NCBI RefSeq assembly: GCF_902652985.1
Contig: NC_047020.1
Coordinates: forward strand, 5,456,001-5,520,000
Direction of reading: 5' to 3'
Length of the DNA: 64,000 nt
Origin: Pecten maximus
Taxonomy: Eukaryota
Below, piece by piece: positions 48,373 to 57,947 of the stretch. The translations under genes were made by a program, and so were the position numbers. Within the stretch, counting starts at the first letter, position 1. Each line of letters opens with the position of its first letter. The notes below the pieces were generated by a model that saw only the letters and a list, made by a program, of their open reading frames with translations, was not told the origin of the DNA and made no database searches.

Positions 48373-49019
48373 CTGGAGACAAACAGCAATATTGGGTTGC
48401 AATGATTTTTTACATGCTTTTTATGATAAAATCAGCTTTTTCTATTTCTTCATTTAATTATAATATTGATAAGGAATTGCAGTATATTTGCCTTATGCCT
48501 AGCACTGTCTTAAATCTGTACAAAAGCCAATTAAGATCTGTTTAGTCCATGATTTATCATCAAGGCTTATCCTTCATTCGCTCGTTCGAAGTTCAAATGA
48601 TGCTAAATTTCATCAAAATAAAGTTTGAAGTTTTTTCTATCAGATAAATATCATTGTTATTGTATAGGTTTAATGGTATATAAGGGCACATGGGTACTCG
48701 AAAGACAGTAACTCTGACATTTACAGTGCAATTAGAAACCCCCACCTGGGGAATTCTCACCTGTTTACACCTGGAATCCTACGTCATTCTAATTTCAGTA
48801 AGAGTGTATATTTTTGACCCTACTTTTTATTCTCGTATATAGAAAGTGCCCATTTCATATAATATTTTCTCAGGAAAACAGCTAGGAACCAAAGAAACAA
48901 ATTTTCTTAAGGGACTTGGTTCAGGTGAAACACCAGCTGATTGGCTGATTTAGTTGTGCACATTCTTTTAGCCTATATACCCACCCTTGATCTATAAATC
49001 TTTTGCTACCTGGAATCAG

Positions 49020-50042
49020 TACAAACTGAGTCACTACTGACCTATTTCTTCTGTCCTTGACCTACCAACATCGTGATACCTAGAAGCTGTACAAACTGAG
49101 TCACTACTGACCAATTTTCCTCTGTCCTTGACCTACCAACCTCGAGATACCTAGAAGCTGTTTAAACTGAGTCACTACTGACCTATTTCCCTCTGTCCTT
49201 GACCTACCAACCTCGAGATACCTAGAAGCTGTTTAAACTGAGTCACTACTGACCTATTTCCCTCTGTCCTTGACCTACCAACCTCGAGATACCTAGAAGC
49301 TGTTTAAACTGAGTCACTACTGACCTATTTCCCTCTGTCCTTGACCTACCAACCTCGTAATACCTAGAAGTTGTACAGTCCAGCTGTCACTACTGACCTA
49401 TTTCCCTCTGTCTTTGACCTACCAACCTCGAGATACCTAGAAGCTGTTTAAACTGAGTCACTACTGACCTATTTCCCTCTGTCTTTGACCTACCAACCTC
49501 GTGATACCTAGAAGCTGTTTAAACTGAGTCACTACTGACCTATTTCCCTCTGTCCTTGACCTACCAACCTCGAGATACCTAGAAGCTGTTTAAACTGAGT
49601 CACTACTGACCTATTTCCCTCTGTCCTTGACCTACCAACCTCGAGATACCTAGAAGCTGTACAAACTGAGTCACTACTGACCTATTTCCCTCTGTCCTTG
49701 ACCTACCAACCTCGTGATACCTAGAAGTTGTACAGTCCAGTTGTCACTACTGACCTATTTCCCTCTGTCCTTGACCTACCAACCTCGAGATACCTAGAAG
49801 CTGTACAAACTGAGTCACTACTGACCTATTTCCCTCTGTCCTTGACCTACCAACCTCGTGATACCTAGAAGCTGTACAGTCCAGCTGTCACTACTGACCT
49901 ATTTCCCTCTGTCTTTGACCTACCAACCTCGAGATACCTAGAAGCTGTTTAAACTGAGTCACTACTGACCTATTTCCTTCTGTCCTTGACCTACCAACCT
50001 CGTGATACATAGAAGCTGTACAGTCCAGCTGTCACTACTTAC
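49020..50042 (-). repeat. 71-bp tandem repeat (about 14 copies) derived from the exon end and donor
   Basis: Unit contains GTCAAGGACAGAGGGAAATAG|GTCAGTAGTGAC versus the real GTCAAGGATATAGACGGAAATAG|GTAAGTAGTGAC. Confidence 0.92.
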
Positions 50043-50167
50043 CTATTTCCGTCTATATCCTTGACATCAAGGATGGAGTAGGAGTGTCTCGGTCTCAGTC
50101 CCACAGCCTCATAACCATCCTCATCCACCTTCATGTTCCCCCTCCACAGGATCCACCCATGAGGAAC
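50043..50167 (-). CDS. CAPN15: Calpain-15 exon with the catalytic His ([15 protein letters not shown]...[13 protein letters not shown]); 1-nt frameshift as written
   Basis: attgcag| and AG|gtaagt. Length is 125 nt where the phases require 126; the G-run at 50138-50142 is one base short. Confidence 0.88.
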
Positions 50168-50289
50168 CTGCAATGACAAGGCCAATCATGTTTGTTAGAA
50201 ATATATTTCTTCAAGGATCTTTTATGTTCACTCATCAAAATAGAAGTATGTTATAACTTCAAAAGGGTGCTAAAATATTAGATTACAAC

Positions 50290-51172
50290 CCTCTGGACTG
50301 TTAACCTCTGAACTGTTAACCTCTGAACTGTTAACCTCAGGACTGTTAACCTCTGAACTGTTAACCTCAGGACTGTTAACCTCTGGACTGTTAACCTGCT
50401 GTAGTGTTGACCTGCTGTAGTGTTAACTACTTGACTGTTAACCTCTTGACTGTTAACCTCTGAACTGTTAACCTCAGGACTGTTAACCTCTGGACTTTTA
50501 ACCTGCTGTAGTGTTGACCTGCTGTAGTGTTAACTACTTGACTGTTAACCTCTTGACTGTTAACCTCAGGACTGTTAACCTCTGGACTGTTAACCTCAGG
50601 ACTGTTAACCTCAGGACTGTTAACCTCAGGACTGTTAACCTCTGGACTGTTAACCTCTGGAGTGTTAACTTCTGGAGTGTTAACCTCTGGAGTGTTAACC
50701 TCTTGACTGTTAACCTGCTGGAGTGTTAACCTCTGGACTGTTAACCTCTGGATTGTTAACCTCTGGATTGTTAACCTCTGGACTGTTAACCTCTGGACTG
50801 TTAACCTCTGGACTGTTAACCTCTTGCCTGTTAACCTCAGGACTGTTAACCTCTTGACTGTTAAACTCAGGTCTGTTAACCTGCTGGAGTGTTAACCTCT
50901 GGACTGTTAACCTCAGGACTGTTAATCTGCTGGAGTGTTAACCTCTGGACTGTTAACCTCAGGACTGTTAATCTGCTGGAGTGTTAACCTCTGGACTGTT
51001 AACCTCAGGTCTGTTAACCACTGGACTGTTAACCACTGGACTGTTAACCTGGAGTGTTAACCTCTGGAGTGTTAACCTCTGGAGTGTTAACCTCTGGAGT
51101 GTTAACCTCAGGCCTGTTAACCTCTGGACTGTTAACCTCAGGACTGTTAATCTGCTGGAGTGTTAACCTCTC
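50290..51172. repeat. 15-bp intronic minisatellite (actgttaacctctgg)
   Basis: Directly visible; each unit carries the palindrome gttaac. Confidence 0.95.
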
Positions 51173-51301
51173 TATACACTCTGGCCTGTAAACATGATAC
51201 TGTTTTTTCTACCTTTTTTATCAAGTAGAACTCTAAATACCTGAAATCCTATGATACATTTAAGCAATAAATAAAATATTGAAAAAGTCATCAATGCTTA
51301 C

Positions 51302-51374
51302 CCTGCATCACGTGAACTCAGAAGGCGTGCCCAGATGAAGTTAGGATCAATGTCTTCCTCCCTTTGCTGGTTAT
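51302..51374 (-). CDS. CAPN15: Calpain-15 exon (DNQQREEDIDPNFIWARLLSSRDAG)
   Basis: tttatag| and GG|gtaagc; IWA..LSS..AG motif; phases 1 to 2. Confidence 0.88.
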
Positions 51375-51508
51375 CTATAAAATAATAAATTATTTCAGTG
51401 GCTAGCATGCTTCTACTGGTTATCTATAAAATAATGAATTATTTCAGTGGCTAGCATGCTTCAACTGGTTATCTATAAAATAATGAATTATTTCAGTGGC
51501 TAGCATGT
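51367..51508 (-). repeat. 49-bp triplication of the acceptor site
   Basis: ctggttatctataaaataat.aattatttcagtggctagcatg at 51367, 51416 and 51465. Confidence 0.92.
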
Positions 51509-51968
51509 GATTAAGAAATATGTGTAAATTCCATCAGTCATAATATACACAGGCTAATTATTCTATATACCTGTGTTTGAATAAATAATTTTCATAAACG
51601 AATGATTCATACATTTACAATATCCACTGTAAAATAGATTGAGGTGATAAATTAGACATTACATTATGTATATAGAAAACTTTATTAGATATAAACAAGA
51701 GGCATTATAATGCAATCTTATATCAACTTATTTCTAAATGAGATGAATTATGAGATTTATAAATGGTTGCCAATGATTACTACTTATTGATTTTAATTTT
51801 ACAAAATGAACTACCTGGTAGTTCCTCCAAAAATATCACAATCAACATCTTCAGAGTGGTTTTTAATTGGGTTTAATTATATGTTCAGTTATTTTTAAAT
51901 ACTGTATTTAGGACAGAATAACTGTTGATATTATAGTATACAACACCTAGGATTAGTGATTTACATAC

Positions 51969-52113: not shown

Positions 52114-53011
52114 CTGGAAGACAGAAATACCGGAAAACCACTTTATATTTGTAATAGTACATGTACAGTCCTTGTGAATAATTTACCAAAATCTTATCAT
52201 TAGTGAAAATAAAATCTGGTGCACACTACAATTTTATCTGAACAATATAGACTGATAAATTTTTTTTATCTGTTAAAGTCTAATATTAAATATTAGGCAG
52301 GTTTACACAGCAGATATGGGGCCTGCCTGTCATCCAAACACAGTCAATTTAACATACTGCATGGCTTCACTTGAAGCTTTTGGAGATTTATGCTCCTCCT
52401 TGCTGACCAGTACAGGTCATGCCAAGGCTAAATAAACTGTATCAAAGGACATCTCATGTCCGCTTGTCAACTGCACACATGTGCAAATATATACTCAAAG
52501 CACCTGCTAGTCTTTATGTTCTCTGTCTCTCAGATAAACAAACCTTATCAAAGCAACTTCCCAGTCTGAATGTAATGGGCACAGATAAGACTTGCATGCA
52601 GATATCATCTTGGGGGAATCTAATTACCCTTATCACCCAGTCTTGGCCAGTCTGGCTCTATCTATGACCTCCCTGACCCTACGGTTATCTATGAAGGGAG
52701 GTTTCACTCCTGCACCTAATTTACATATTCTAATTAAACAGCCCCTTACTAACAAGGTAAGGATGTCAAGAGATCCAATCAGAAGACCACGCTCGGTCAC
52801 ATGGCTAATGTCAATTTCTCCTCAGAAATTCTATCCAAATTGCCATTGTTGTTCTAACTGCTCGAACAAACAGTCATATTCCAAAACTCTCTGTGTTTTG
52901 TTGGCCTCTCTTCAGAGACTGCTACAACTTCATCCATTCACCGAAATTGTCACTACTTAACAGTTACATCCTCAGCAAGACATTCTTCTAAAACACTCAT
53001 CAGTTAAAGAT

Positions 53012-54310
53012 ATGTCAGGACGTGGAAAAGGTCAACCTCGTGGGCGCAAACGAAGGGCACCTGAAGACATTAATGACACTCTTAATTCTGCTGTCAGTAC
53101 GACAGGCGGTAATGACAGCAACTGGGACCCTAATAAGCCAGAAAACTGGACTATAGGTGAACTAAGGACACGACTGCTGGAGCAGAACATCAGACCACCA
53201 TGTGGTTTTACAAAAACAATGCTGGTCAAACTGTACAAAGAAAATAATACCAGTGTTAGTGATGGTAACAGTGATGTTACGCCACCTACTGAGAATGACC
53301 TTACACAGCCTGGCTACCACAGCAGGAATCTCCCGTCAAATGAGGCAATGAAGGCTCTACAAGCACATGTTACCAGGCTGGAGCAATTAATACTGTGCCA
53401 AAATACAGTAGCAGTCGGACAGGCCCCAGCTGTACCAGGTCATGTCCTGACTGCGACCTCAACAACCTCACCAACCTCACCGACCTTAGAGCCCCCAGCC
53501 ATAGCAGGAAGCATACCAAACAATTATGTGCCTCAGCCTGCTATCCTTCTACAACAGACAGGAATTTCATCAGAATCTCTGCCATCAATAGAAGTCGTAC
53601 CTCAAGCCATACGCCAGCAGATAACAGAAGGTAAGGACGTCAACTTAGCTCTACTATTACTGCCATCTTATGACTATGATTGCACTCGCTACAATCGATT
53701 CACTGAAGTTGGGGGGCGTACTGTCCCGCTCCAAACAGACCCACGTCTATGTAAATCTCTCACCCTCGGAGAGTTTGTCAAGGCCTTCTCGATATACAGG
53801 AGCATCATGTGCGAATATTACCCTAATCGCAGACAGGAGCTAGACATCTACGAGCGAGACATAGTAGAACTAGCCACAACATATCCTGGTCCTGTATTCT
53901 ATGAATACCATAAAGCTTTCGCCACTAGGGCCGCAGCACTATTACACCAGCGTGGCATTAAGGTCAACTGGGCGATTCGGGACAATCAACTTTACACCAC
54001 GATATGTTCCGGATTTCGGAGTAACAGCTGCAAACTGTGCAACAACATGAATCATACCGAAGACTTCTGTCCTCTCATTTTGAATGGACTAGGATCATCA
54101 GCAAAAAACCATAAAGGAAATAATAGGAATGGGGACAGCAACACGGACAGTAAAGGAAGGACCAGGGTCATTCACCATGGTAAAGAGGTCTGCAACAATT
54201 ACAACGACCAAGATGGCTGTAACCGTGACAATTGCCCCTACCTTCACATTAAGAAATCTTCAATGAAATCTGCTAAAACACATAAAACCAACGAATCAGC
54301 TAAACAATGA
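53012..54310 (+). CDS. Gag-like ORF1 with N-terminal SAP/LEM-like helix pair and C-terminal Cys/His motifs
   Basis: WTIGELRTRL...TKTMLVKLY; core GKDVNL..LL, FYEYHKAF; C-x2-C-x4-H-x4-C and CNNYN..GC....C.YLH. Confidence 0.85.
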   Translation: MSGRGKGQPRGRKRRAPEDINDTLNSAVSTTGGNDSNWDPNKPENWTIGELRTRLLEQNIRPPCGFTKTMLVKLYKENNTSVSDGNSDVTPPTENDLTQPGYHSRNLPSNEAMKALQAHVTRLEQLILCQNTVAVGQAPAVPGHVLTATSTTSPTSPTLEPPAIAGSIPNNYVPQPAILLQQTGISSESLPSIEVVPQAIRQQITEGKDVNLALLLLPSYDYDCTRYNRFTEVGGRTVPLQTDPRLCKSLTLGEFVKAFSIYRSIMCEYYPNRRQELDIYERDIVELATTYPGPVFYEYHKAFATRAAALLHQRGIKVNWAIRDNQLYTTICSGFRSNSCKLCNNMNHTEDFCPLILNGLGSSAKNHKGNNRNGDSNTDSKGRTRVIHHGKEVCNNYNDQDGCNRDNCPYLHIKKSSMKSAKTHKTNESAKQ

Positions 54311-55936
54311 CAAAAGGCTAACCTCCAGGATTTCAAGGCGTCAACTCCTATCAATATAGCAGCACTGGAGAGAGAACTAGAAAACCACCCTGATAAGAAC
54401 TTTGTGCAGTCTTTGATTTCTGGATTATCAGACGGCTTTGACACTGGAATGTCTGCATTACCAGAGACATCTCTAATCTGCAAGAACTTAAAAAGTGCCA
54501 CTTCTGAACCAGACATCGTCGATGAACTTATAACTAGCGAAGTTAACAAGAAATTCTTAATTGGCCCTTATACAGAACCCCCTTTTGATATATACAGGAT
54601 TAACCCAATTGGAATAGCGACAGGGAAGTACTCTGACAAGAAACGTCTAATCGTGGACCTTTCTGCCCCCCATGACTCCGAAGGTAACAGCATCAACGAA
54701 TTAATTGCTAAAGAGGAATACTCATTGTCGTACATTAGTGTTGATGACGCCATAAATCAAATCCAGCATACAGGAAGACACTCCAAGCTGTGTAAACTTG
54801 ACATAACAGATGCCCTTAAACTTATACCTGTTTCTCCAAAACTCTGGCCTTTCTACGGTATATGCTGGAAACAACAGTACTATTTTTATACCAAACTCAC
54901 TTTTGGGTGTCGTTCCAGTCCTAAGATCTTTGACCTTTTATCAACCGCTCTCTGTTGGATTTTATCAACTAACTATCAGATAGAATACATAATTCACTAC
55001 CTGGATGACTTTCTTACAATCGACAGACCAAATGTGGTAGCTGAACGAACAATGGCAATTTTGTCCAAGGTTTTTACAGCACTCAATATTCCAGTGTCTC
55101 CTCACAAAACATTGGGTCCATCTGAGAGTTTAGAGTTTCTAGGAATCACTCTGGACACTAGTAACATGGAAGCACGCCTGCCGGCAAATAAAGTGCAGAG
55201 AATAACTCAAACAATCAAATCTTTCTGTAAACGCAAAAAGGTCACAAAGCGCGAACTATTAAGCCTTTTGGGACATATGAACTTTGCTAGTCGGGTGATC
55301 ATTCAAGGACGCTCGTTTATATCTTATCTCTTAAATCTTGCCGCCTCAGTCAAACAGTTGCATCATCATGTACAACTTACTGGGGCCTGTCAGCAGGACT
55401 TATTTATGTGGTATACTTTCACAGATCAATGGAACGGAAATTCACTCTTCCTCCAGGAGACGACAACATTAGCTCACGATATAAATCTCTACACAGATGC
55501 AGCCGGAGGAATTGGATTTGGTGCTTTTTATGACGGTCAGTGGTTCCACGGTCACTGGCCACATCAAATATCCTTGAACAGTTCTGAAATGTCAATTGCT
55601 TTCATGGAATTATATCCTATCGTACTGGCCTGTATGATATGGGGACACAAGTGGTCAGGTCTCAGAATTAGACTACACTGTGACAATCAAGCAACTGTTG
55701 ATATCATCAGGAAAGGACGTTCTAAATGCGCTTATATCATGCCATTTATGCGACGTTTAACTTGGTGTACCTTTATCCACAACTTCGTTCTCACAGCCGT
55801 GCATATTCCTGGAAAACAGAATAATATTGCTGATGCCTTATCTCGTTTCCAGATGGACCGGTTCCACGACTTGGCACCAGCAGCAAAGAAGAGCCAAAAT
55901 CCCATTCCGGATTACGACAATGTGCCTCTATACTAG
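54311..55936 (+). CDS. Reverse transcriptase + RNase H, same frame as gag immediately after the TGA
   Basis: STPINI..LE.EL.NHPD..FV..L..GF, FGCRSSP, YLDDF, FLGI; RNase H TDAAG, ELYP, CDNQ, NNIADALSR. Confidence 0.92.
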   Translation, partial: QKANLQDFKASTPINIAALERELENHPDKNFVQSLISGLSDGFDTGMSALPETSLICKNLKSATSEPDIVDELITSEVNKKFLIGPYTEPPFDIYRINPIGIATGKYSDKKRLIVDLSAPHDSEGNSINELIAKEEYSLSYISVDDAINQIQHTGRHSKLCKLDITDALKLIPVSPKLWPFYGICWKQQYYFYTKLTFGCRSSPKIFDLLSTALCWILSTNYQIEYIIHYLDDFLTIDRPNVVAERTMAILSKVFTALNIPVSPHKTLGPSESLEFLGITLDTSNMEARLPANKVQRITQTIKSFCKRKKVTKRELLSLLGHMNFASRVIIQGRSFISYLLNLAASVKQLHHHVQLTGACQQDLFMWYTFTDQWNGNSLFLQETTTLAHDINLYTDAAGGIGFGAFYDGQWFHGHWPHQISLNSSEMSIAFMELYPIVLACMIWGHKWSGLRIRLHCDNQATVDIIRKGRSKCAYIMPFMRRLTWCTFIHNFVLTAVHIPGKQNNIADALSRFQMDRFHDLAPAAKKSQNPIPDYDNVPLY

Positions 55937-56931
55937 AACCAGCAGTGCGTGACCTATGGAATGCTGCAGTGGCTCATTCGACTAGAACTACCTACACATC
56001 AGGTGTTTCCTGTTTCAAGAACTTCATCCTCATGAATGGTATAAACGACCAAGCAAGTGTGTTTACCAACGTTACAGAAGAATTATTAATACTCTTCGTG
56101 ACTCATTGTTATCATAACCTCAGATTGAAATATTCTACAATTAAGCTGTATTTATACGGAATTAAGTTCCATTGTACTATGCAGGGGCTCAGCAACCCGC
56201 TTGTGAATACTCATGGGTTACCACTTTACCGACTCCAGACCATATTACGGGGATTAAAGAAACTACAGGGAACTCCGGTAAAACCTAGACTCCCCATAAC
56301 TTTCAACATATTGTCTAAGTTATGCTCAGCATTTCGACAGGGTGTTTTCGATCCTGCCACAGACACTACTATGGAGGCTGCCTGCTGTGTGGCCTTCTTC
56401 GCATTCTTACGGTGCGGAGAATTCACATGCACCACTAACACATTTGATTCTTCAATTCACTTGTGTATCAGCGACATTCAAGTAGCACCAGACAGTAACA
56501 GCATGACATTGCGCCTCAAGGCGTCCAAAACCGACCCCTTTCGTCAAGGAGTCACCATTCACCTGTTCCGCACCCATCACCATGTATGTGCTGTAGCCGC
56601 TGTCATCAGAATGCTAACAGAAAGATTCATGAATGGTTGTCGTCCTTCGGACCCCCTATTTTCCATTCATTCTGCTGCCTTGACTCGACATGTTTTCATT
56701 GACAAACTAAGACAGACCTTGATCCGACTAGGTCTAAATCATTCACTATACACAGGACATTCCTTCAGAATAGGAGCCGCAACTACTGCCGCCCAGTCAG
56801 ATGTCCCCGATCACCTCATCAAAGTGCTTGGACGCTGGCAATCGGATAGCTACTGTCGATACATCCGTACCCCTCATCATATTCTCCGGAAAGCTCAAGC
56901 AGAAATGTGCAAGATTTCACCTGATATTTAG
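55853..56931 (+). CDS. Tyrosine recombinase (no proximal ATG; predicted spliced exon)
   Basis: Catalytic set FLRCGE, SKTD, HSFRIGAAT, GRW.S..Y.RY; frame open from 55834. Confidence 0.9.
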
Positions 56932-57947
56932 TAGCCTAGTGGCTGCCTTCTGTGTTCAAGAGTGTCTAAGTGTGTACTCTTTATAGGGCGAGTATATCTA
57001 TAATGAGTACTAATTATTCCACTGGATTAACATGTATATTGATGTGCTAATCTGTCATCATTCACACAGGATTTATGTGCATATTCCATTGGATTTATAT
57101 GTGTGTAAATGTGCTTATCTGTCACCATTCAGATGGGATATATGTGTGTATTCGTTTAGGGCGAGTATATCTAAACGGTACTATTACGGCCCTCATACTC
57201 AACAACTAACAGAAACGAAGGTAACAGAACACATTCTGTAGCCATGCAGGCCAGCATTCTTGTAAGGATTACATCTGGACATTCCGAATTGGGATACAGA
57301 ACCGAACTAAATGTTTACTAGTCATTGACATTAGTACCCTGTTTTCTTTTACACCTAAGTACCTCTGAGGACAATAACTGTATTCGATACTGAGGCATTC
57401 TGCCAGAATTTGTCTATGACTTGCTGTATATCTTCTCAATTATGTCATATTCTCCCGGTGGCGCTGGGGATAAAGGTGTCTCATACCCTACATTCCCTCT
57501 TTGGGGTCCTCGTATCATCACATGCTTATAAACCATGTCTCTCATACTCCTTTGGGCCTATGGCAGTAAACTGACACCATGTAATAACATAATAACATGG
57601 ACTATTAATGATGCCAGACTACTGCTATACACCACAAATCGGTCAATCCAACCCCAGAACCAAGGGTTAGCTGGACTGCATACATCAACTCTATCTGGCC
57701 CAGGGTAAGACAGCAAGTCGAACCCCAAGCCTAAGTGATGTAACTCCCAACTCTTGCCGACTCCTGGACATTTGAGCGACCAGGCTATGGTACCCATGAG
57801 CTTCAGGTCAGCCATACCTCCAAGTCATGTTCTCAACGGGTTGTTGGCCATAGCTTTTCAGCACCATGCTCTTCAGCATTACGGGGTTCAAATAGCCCAC
57901 GGCTATACCCCACCCGGTCCAAGGGAGGTAACTGCTAAGGTGATATG

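Follow-up and report, generated by a model that had tools for sequence, protein, structure and literature searches.

Within a 64,000-nucleotide window of the king scallop Pecten maximus genome (NCBI RefSeq assembly GCF_902652985.1, contig NC_047020.1, positions 5,456,001 to 5,520,000 of the forward strand) lies a copy of a young Ngaro-like tyrosine recombinase (YR) retrotransposon with an intact 5' end and a truncated 3' end, encoding Gag, a reverse transcriptase (RT)/RNase H Pol and a recombinase whose reading frame overlaps pol. The coordinates of its features are collected in Table 1. At least 13 other copies at 99-100% identity span the same interval. In comparison with a full sibling copy (L002), in which the 606 bp of A1 recur 100% identical after B1 as A2 and the 473 bp of B1 recur 100% identical as B2, the window copy stops 74 bp before the end of B1 and lacks A2, the 61-bp spacer and B2.

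Table 1 Features of the Ngaro-like element, in window positions (a slash in a motif marks the exon/intron boundary)
Feature	Position	Strand	Description
Element copy	52273..57947	+	5' end intact, 3' end truncated
A1 split direct repeat	52273..52878	+	606 bp, the 5' leader
Gag ORF	53012..54310	+	432 aa, ends in TGA, in frame with pol; CCHC knuckle and CCCH finger near the C-terminus
Coding part of exon 1	53012..53630	+	Gag codons 1-206 plus the first base (G) of codon 207
Basic NLS-like stretch	53012..53071	+	MSGRGKGQPRGRKRRAPED
Helix-extended loop-helix module, SAP/LEM-like	53132..53251	+	Gag residues 41-80; predicted fold
5' splice site	53628..53636	+	AAG/GTAAGG, within ATAACAGAAG/GTAAGGACG; last exon base 53630; phase 1, splitting Gly codon GGT of E-G-K-D-V-N-L
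Predicted intron	53631..55852	+	2222 nt; the gag C-terminal 226 codons, the TGA and RT/RNase H up to ADALSRFQ
Pol ORF	54311..55936	+	RT and RNase H, 541 codons, stop TAG; no methyltransferase domain
Candidate branch point	55828..55834	+	TGCTGAT, A at 55833, 19 nt before the acceptor
Pol/YR overlap	55834..55936	+	103 nt; YR frame opens at 55834 straight after a TGA created by GC-TGA-T
Pyrimidine-rich tract and 3' splice site	55835..55852	+	...TCTCGTTTCCAG/; TTATCTCGTTTCCAG/ ends at 55852, inside the RNase H codons A-D-A-L-S-R-F-Q, ending the pol codon for Q
Coding part of exon 2	55853..56931	+	AT completes GAT (Asp), then 358 YR-frame codons and TAG; R, K, HxxR, W and Y catalytic residues
GTG codon in the YR frame	55945	+	Listed by an ORF caller
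First ATG in the YR frame	56032	+	
B1 split direct repeat	57549..57947	+	First 399 of 473 bp present

Assignment of the element to the Ngaro-like group rests on several features. A Pfam search of Pol returned RVT_1 (E 1.9e-10, above the cut-off) and no other family, and as Pol ends 27 codons after ADALSRFQ there is no methyltransferase domain following RNase H, which distinguishes Ngaro from DIRS1-like and PAT-like elements. The RNase H C-terminal motif ADALSR is shared with all relatives. The recombinase has 4121 homologues and in a 37-sequence alignment R156, K195, H272, R275 and W298 are invariant and Y306 near-invariant, although the Pfam Phage_integrase score of 17.9 bits is below the cut-off of 27.1. 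For the window's Gag no Pfam family was found at E<=0.01, while UniRef names a 97% identical protein a C3H1-type domain protein.

The recombinase frame lies -1 to pol and has no usable start codon, as initiation at its first ATG would remove the invariant residues T13, Y17 and G20 of the YR N-terminus. An earlier note had proposed that splicing from a donor inside gag to an acceptor in the RNase H codons produces a Gag-YR fusion, and its coordinates, phases and arithmetic proved correct to the base. Translation of the two joined exons gives an open product of 565 aa plus the stop, with the junction ...RQQITE/DGPVPR. The donor is the best-scoring GT in the gag ORF and is intact in all 23 sibling copies read. 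The candidate branch point is plausible but is not conserved as such, with relatives carrying GCT, GCG, GCA or AGT followed by GAY at this position.

In order to determine whether public annotations contain the predicted junction we looked at RefSeq gene models. Three P. maximus models (XP_033730321.1, annotated as an uncharacterized protein, XP_033724728.1 and XP_033728625.1), each of 565 aa, carry the junction (...QQIIE/DGPVPR) and one maps exactly to GT-AG on a sibling copy (L003), with exon 1 of XP_033730321.1 identical in arrangement to that of the window copy. Homologous two-exon models from Mytilus trossulus, M. californianus, Mizuhopecten and Argopecten (two families) map to the same architecture, with a phase-1 donor, an acceptor right after AD.LSR[FLS]Q and GT-AG introns of 2298-2378 nt, and models from Haliotis, Ylistrum, M. 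galloprovincialis and M. edulis show the same junction peptide. For one further model no exact two-exon solution was found because the copy at its locus differs from the modelled one, and its sites were read from a PWM scan instead. The RefSeq models may however rest partly on ab initio prediction or on protein-to-genome transfer between annotations and are therefore not fully independent of the splice signals themselves. No fusion ORF from a Logan or ENA read assembly appeared among the hits of searches made exon by exon or with public protein ids, a 526-aa candidate on a 1664-nt ENA contig proving to be a full Gag. Neither was an intron-less genomic copy found among about 33 copies, the exon-1 end and exon-2 start being 2215-2224 nt apart in the young copies and 1449-2450 nt apart in the older ones, with a single old copy in which about 160 nt separate them, which is not an exact intron loss.

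In order to address conservation independently of gene models we grouped the YR proteins into 40 families (<70% identity), mostly from 80 metagenome loci chosen without reference to gene models, and scored splice sites with PWMs whose values are generic. The best acceptor lies at a pol-codon boundary in 31/36 families in comparison with 24% in 312 control zones (p 6e-15), and acceptor scores have a median of 4.1 against 1.3 in controls (p 2e-14), although part of the pyrimidine tract is forced by the conserved L-S-R-F codons. The best gag donor is phase 1 in 25/30 families against 53% in pol and YR control ORFs (p 6e-4) and scores higher than in pol (p 9e-4), and the top donor and top acceptor are in frame in 22/30. 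The pair of sites is conserved in position and phase, more than by chance, across families sharing only 35-50% YR identity. A relative 75% identical at the nucleotide level from another sample also keeps both sites.

The earlier note had suggested testing whether particular codons are used specifically at the two sites, and this test comes out in favour with a refinement. The acceptor is a pol-frame CAG in essentially all relatives, and among families with Q two codons after LSR 16 use CAG and 1 uses CAA, against a 55% CAG background (p 6e-4). The Gly of the gag motif is GGT in 12/20 families against a 30% background (p 0.004) and the following codon is AAG or GAG in 13/17 (p 0.007). Families lacking this donor have another strong phase-1 G/GT donor some tens of codons upstream, so phase is conserved while the donor site turns over. 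Of the outcomes that the note had named as refuting, free synonymous variation at the sites and a conserved start codon for YR were not found as a general pattern, with a Met upstream of the conserved YR N-terminus in only about 11/36 families. The pol-to-YR frame relation is -1 in 35 of 36 families with a usable motif while the gag-to-pol relation varies, which is exactly what a fixed splice phase predicts.

Taken together the element probably makes its recombinase from a spliced RNA. In this model the full-length RNA encodes Gag, and Gag-RT/RNase H would follow if the single in-frame TGA is read through, while a fraction of the RNA is spliced, removing the gag C-terminal half and all of RT/RNase H. 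Translation from the gag AUG then yields a protein consisting of the Gag N-terminal 206 aa, with the basic stretch, the SAP/LEM-like module and a low-complexity linker, fused in frame to the complete recombinase. That the splice occurs in vivo and that it is partial are inferred, as is the suggestion in the earlier note of a switch between a replication and an integration mRNA. If correct, the splice would give these elements a retrovirus-like two-RNA programme, explain the fixed -1 frame relation without frameshifting, show that many uncharacterized proteins of about 525-600 aa in mollusc RefSeq annotations are transposon recombinase fusions, and define a full-length protein for biochemical study of eukaryotic YR retrotransposition.

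The SAP/LEM-like module, also proposed in the earlier note, has only weak though mutually consistent support. An NWT...L...I...L pattern is invariant among 7 families, a profile search gave a hit to the LAP2 LEM-like domain (E 0.12), and relatives gave weak Pfam hits to Thymopoietin (E 0.0056) and SAP (E 0.039). The AF2 model (pLDDT 86-91) predicts helices at residues 48-57 and 68-80, and the top Foldseek hits are SAP domains with probabilities of 0.85 and 0.75 but E values of 0.6-1.4. The basic NLS-like stretch is recognised from sequence only, although Arg/Lys-rich N-termini recur in relatives. That the N-terminal region brings nuclear or DNA targeting to the recombinase is an inference.

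Of the alternatives, the one that survives best, though it is unlikely, is that the splice happens but the product is not the working recombinase, being instead a regulator, a dominant-negative form or a by-product, or that the signals are used by host gene predictors only. There is no functional data of any kind, and an RT-deleted subfamily carrying CAA instead of CAG at the acceptor still reached at least 9 copies, so the acceptor is not needed in cis for copying. Trans-complementation however explains this defective subfamily, the fusion keeps the whole YR including all catalytic residues and is the only complete open route to it in most families, and conservation across families of 35-50% identity argues for function. 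Production of a Gag-Pol-YR polyprotein by -1 ribosomal frameshifting, with the splice-like signals as by-products of conserved codons, appears less likely still. A -1 overlap of 79-217 nt is found in nearly all relatives, an arrangement classically read as frameshifting, but there is no X_XXY_YYZ heptamer in the overlap of this element and only 1/36 families has one, two recoding events in series (TGA readthrough and then a frameshift) would be needed, and neither the preference for CAG over CAA and for GGT over other Gly codons nor the excess of phase-1 donors in gag is explained. Independent translation of YR from the internal ATG, from a non-AUG codon such as the GTG or from a subgenomic transcript with its own promoter is very unlikely, as this element and 25/36 families have no Met before the conserved N-terminal motif and evidence for an internal promoter was neither sought nor found, although in about 11/36 families a Met lies 14-16 residues before the conserved N-terminus and many database ORFs start there, so some relatives may also use their own start.

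A broader reading, which we offer only tentatively, is that Gag(N)-to-YR splicing is the ancestral and general way in which the animal Ngaro-like clade expresses its recombinase and is the reason for the near-universal -1 pol/YR overlap, with the donor moving between two or more phase-1 Gly codons and the acceptor among pol-frame CAG codons 2 to 12 codons after LSR. The shared N-terminal module would then tether both Gag and the recombinase to DNA or chromatin, much as LAP2/BAF factors act on retroviral preintegration complexes.

The element shares with Ngaro elements, YR retrotransposons of the order DIRS (Goodwin and Poulter 2004; PMC9210276; PMC13465315), a Gag-like ORF, RT/RNase H without a methyltransferase, a recombinase ORF overlapping pol and split direct repeats A1...B1-A2-B2, of which the window copy itself lacks A2 and B2. 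The papers we read describe the ORFs only as overlapping and give no expression route for YR, and none mentions splicing of YR retrotransposons, in a reading that did not extend to key Ngaro papers such as Goodwin and Poulter 2004 and Poulter and Butler 2015; a conserved gag-to-YR splice is what is proposed here. Gag residues 41-80, predicted to fold as two helices around an extended loop, give weak profile and fold matches to LAP2/thymopoietin LEM-like and SAP domains, helix-extended loop-helix DNA or chromatin binders, with all matches below the curated thresholds, and a LAP2alpha-type domain is reported in Xenopus DIRS-like gag (PMC9210276). Alternative splicing also appears to create distinct RNA pools and set protein ratios in copia and BARE (PMC3735527), although those splices seem to remove pol sequence to make Gag alone, whereas the one proposed here removes the gag C-terminus and RT/RNase H to make a Gag(N)-recombinase fusion. 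In foamy viruses an enzyme of the element is likewise probably made from a spliced RNA rather than by Gag-Pol recoding, but foamy Pol is probably not fused to Gag and includes RT, while here RT stays on the unspliced RNA and only the recombinase is split off. The arrangement also resembles that of retroviral subgenomic mRNAs such as the env mRNA of avian sarcoma/leukosis virus, in which the 5' splice site appears to lie just inside gag and the acceptor at the end of pol, so that a short Gag-Env fusion is translated from the gag AUG and, splicing being partial, unspliced RNA remains both genome and Gag/Pol mRNA; here 206 Gag residues including a predicted folded module are carried over rather than 6, and the downstream gene is the integration enzyme and not an envelope protein.

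In the 918 Mb genome of Pecten maximus the window carries one copy of a retrotransposon for which we found at least 13 further copies at 99-100% identity together with an older set at 92-97%. The copy comprises a direct repeat (A1), a gag ORF with a CCHC knuckle and a CCCH finger, an RT/RNase H (pol) ORF (Pfam RVT_1 E 1.9e-10), a tyrosine recombinase (YR) frame that is -1 to pol, and a second repeat (B1). Gag and pol are separated by a single in-frame TGA (CAA TGA CAA), which implies readthrough for Gag-Pol. There is no methyltransferase domain and the catalytic R, K, HxxR, W and Y of the YR are present. Full sibling copies continue with the rest of B1, A2 (identical to A1), 61 bp and B2 (identical to B1), which is the split-direct-repeat layout of Ngaro elements, whereas the window copy stops 74 bp before the end of B1 and lacks A2, the spacer and B2, so that its ORFs are intact but its 3' end is truncated.

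Positions of the element, its reading frames and the candidate splice signals within the window
Feature	Position	Detail
Dense tandem arrays just upstream of the element	49000-51520	Units of 15, about 71 and 49 nt
Retrotransposon copy	52273-57947
Repeat A1	52273-52878	606 bp
Second perfect donor consensus in the A1 leader	52756/52757	AAG/GTAAGG, upstream of the gag ATG
Candidate acceptor before the gag ATG	52975/52976	CTTAAC ... CATCCTCAG/, 36 nt before the gag ATG
Gag ORF	53012-54310	432 aa
Private substitution	53625	ACA (Thr) where 22 sibling copies have ATA (Ile), 6 nt before the donor
Donor	53630/53631	AAG/GTAAGG, after the first base of gag codon 207
TGA between gag and pol	54308-54310
RT/RNase H ORF	54311-55936
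Equivalent of the deletion in the older subfamily	55065-55515	451 bp, inside RT
TGCTGAT, proposed as a branch point in the earlier note	55828-55834
Open YR frame	55834-56931	-1 to pol
Acceptor	ends at 55852	...TCTCGTTTCCAG/
First ATG of the YR frame	56032	30 residues into the conserved N-terminal domain
Repeat B1		Truncated in this copy
End of this copy	57947/57948

The earlier note had claimed that a donor within gag and an acceptor within the RNase H codons are joined to give a Gag-YR fusion, and every coordinate that it gave is right. Joining G with AT gives GAT in the YR frame and the product is 565 aa, whereas starting at the first ATG of the YR frame would remove the invariant residues T13, Y17 and G20. 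The second donor in the A1 leader and the candidate acceptor before the gag ATG could together form a 219-nt 5'-UTR intron, or the leader donor could serve as an alternative donor.

Among public gene models, a search with the YR part alone returned a 565-aa RefSeq protein of P. maximus that is 100% identical over the query and reads ...RQQIIE/DGPVPRLG..., exactly the predicted junction. Mapped on a sibling copy (L003) it needs one GT-AG intron of 2222 nt at the homologous positions, and the 90% cluster holds three such P. maximus models (XP_033730321.1, XP_033724728.1 and XP_033728625.1), all named 'uncharacterized protein'. A GenBank metagenome contig of 5875 bp ('invertebrate metagenome') carries this same element, with proteins P0122 and P0133 (PJE78264.1 and CI610_02804), the gag being 97% identical to that of the window and the YR falling in the same 90% cluster as the database protein labelled P0001, and here host (scallop-like) DNA is probably sitting in a metagenome record. 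Models of 525-602 aa with a Gag-type N-terminus (the NWT...L...I...L motif) and a YR only 42-49% identical to ours exist in Mizuhopecten yessoensis, Argopecten irradians, Ylistrum balloti, Mytilus trossulus, M. edulis, M. californianus, M. galloprovincialis and Haliotis cracherodii. All of these models, those of P. maximus included, may depend on the splice signals themselves or on protein transfer between annotations, so they are not proof of RNA. Genomic DNA was retrieved for five of the models from other species and each maps to a two-exon GT-AG structure with a phase-1 donor that splits a Gly codon (G/GTAAGG, G/GTGGGT or G/GTGAGA), an acceptor immediately after the RNase H motif AD.LSR[F/L/S]Q and an intron of 2298-2378 nt that contains the gag C-terminus and all of RT/RH.

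To obtain a sample not chosen through gene models we used a profile of 37 YR ORFs, which retrieved 80 metagenome loci with flanks and, together with the loci of the mapped models, these form 40 families at <70% YR identity. In 35 of the 36 families with a usable RNase H motif YR is -1 to pol, whereas the gag-to-pol frame relation is not conserved, with pol in frame 0, +1 or +2 relative to gag in related families. The candidate acceptor is always a pol-frame CAG but its position moves, lying two codons after LSR (LSRFQ/), four or five codons after LSR (LSRFNFQ/, LSRFNMLQ/) or nine to twelve codons after LSR (..LPSFQ/, ..FLLQ/).

Sites were then scored with generic splice-site weight matrices, which are a heuristic only. 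The best acceptor between the RNase H motif and the conserved YR N-terminus lies at a pol-codon boundary in 31/36 families compared with 24% in 312 equal-sized control zones inside pol (p 6e-15), and it also scores far higher than in the controls with a median of 4.1 versus 1.3 (p 2e-14). The best donor in the gag ORF is phase 1 in 25/30 families. As GTRAG in phase 2 creates stop codons the control ORFs (pol, YR) themselves give 53% phase 1, so the corrected p is 6e-4. The gag donors score higher than the best donors of the longer pol ORFs (p 9e-4) and the top donor and top acceptor are in frame in 22/30 families.

The earlier note had proposed testing whether GK is encoded specifically as G/GT AAG and FQ as TTY CAG, and we looked at synonymous usage at both sites. 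Background Gln usage in these elements is 55% CAG, and among families with Q two codons after LSR 16 use CAG and 1 uses CAA, that one having a second TTT CAG two codons later (p 6e-4). The Gly of the conserved gag motif G[KE][DF][VI][NE]L is GGT in 12/20 families against a 30% background (p 0.004) and the next codon ends in AG in 13/17 families (p 0.007). Families without GGT at that motif have another strong phase-1 G/GT donor some tens of codons upstream, often before a G..LP.F-like motif, and the Mizuhopecten and Argopecten gene models use a donor of this upstream kind, so the donor site turns over while its phase is kept. A relative with about 75% nt identity, from a Logan assembly of another sample, keeps both sites.

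Within the genome all 23 copies that could be read keep the donor, and the private substitution in the window copy leaves the donor consensus unchanged. The older RT-deleted subfamily (loci L017-L029, 92-97% identity, at least 9 loci) could be read at the acceptor in nine loci, several of which are overlapping fetches of the same insertions, and these share CGT>CAT, which breaks ADALSR (to ADALSH), and CAG>CAA, which removes the acceptor AG. This is one inherited event in a defective, presumably trans-mobilised lineage, which looks non-autonomous and to have lost pol function and the acceptor together, and it shows that the acceptor is not needed in cis for copying.

No intron-less copy exists among about 33 genomic copies, which fits a spliced RNA that is not copied but equally fits no splicing. 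An old copy (83-91% identity) on contig C5 (51283954-51284617, minus strand) has only about 160 nt between the equivalents of the exon-1 end and exon-2 start, a large internal deletion close to the predicted intron but not identical to it. With regard to translation of YR from its own start codon, a Met upstream of the conserved YR N-terminus occurs in about 11/36 families and many database ORFs start there, so some lineages may also use their own start, but this element and most families cannot. One Mizuhopecten gene model (protein P0089, 377 aa) reads from the RNase H end (ADSLSRLQMDRF...) straight into the YR N-terminus in one frame, so that in at least one family or copy pol and YR may be continuous, or the model hides a small intron. 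For -1 frameshifting, a canonical slippery heptamer occurs in the pol/YR overlap of only 1/36 families and not in this element.

The Gag N-terminal part that the predicted fusion would carry was also examined. Seven families share a basic N-terminus and a motif around NWT...L...I...L, a profile of which hits the LAP2 LEM-like domain (1gjj E 0.12, 1h9e E 0.67), and single members touch Pfam Thymopoietin (E 0.0056) and SAP (E 0.039). The signal is weak but all points the same way, to a possible helix-extended loop-helix DNA or chromatin-binding module, with AlphaFold2 giving two confident helices (48-57 and 68-80, pLDDT 86-91) around an extended loop and the two best Foldseek hits being SAP domains (probability 0.85 and 0.75, E 0.6-1.4). 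A LAP2alpha-type domain has been reported in Xenopus DIRS-like gag (PMC9210276).

Taken together the sites and the open fusion frame are confirmed, and comparative evidence and public models support the interpretation that the recombinase is made from a spliced RNA, which we consider likely although direct RNA proof is outstanding. In the literature on DIRS/Ngaro elements that we examined the ORFs are described as overlapping and there is no mention of splicing for YR expression, although this literature was incomplete and prior mention cannot be excluded. While a gag-to-YR splice may be new, the principle has precedents. Avian retrovirus env mRNA probably borrows the gag AUG through a donor inside gag, foamy virus Pol appears to come from its own spliced RNA, and the copia and BARE retrotransposons are likely also to splice their transcripts (BARE: PMC3735527).
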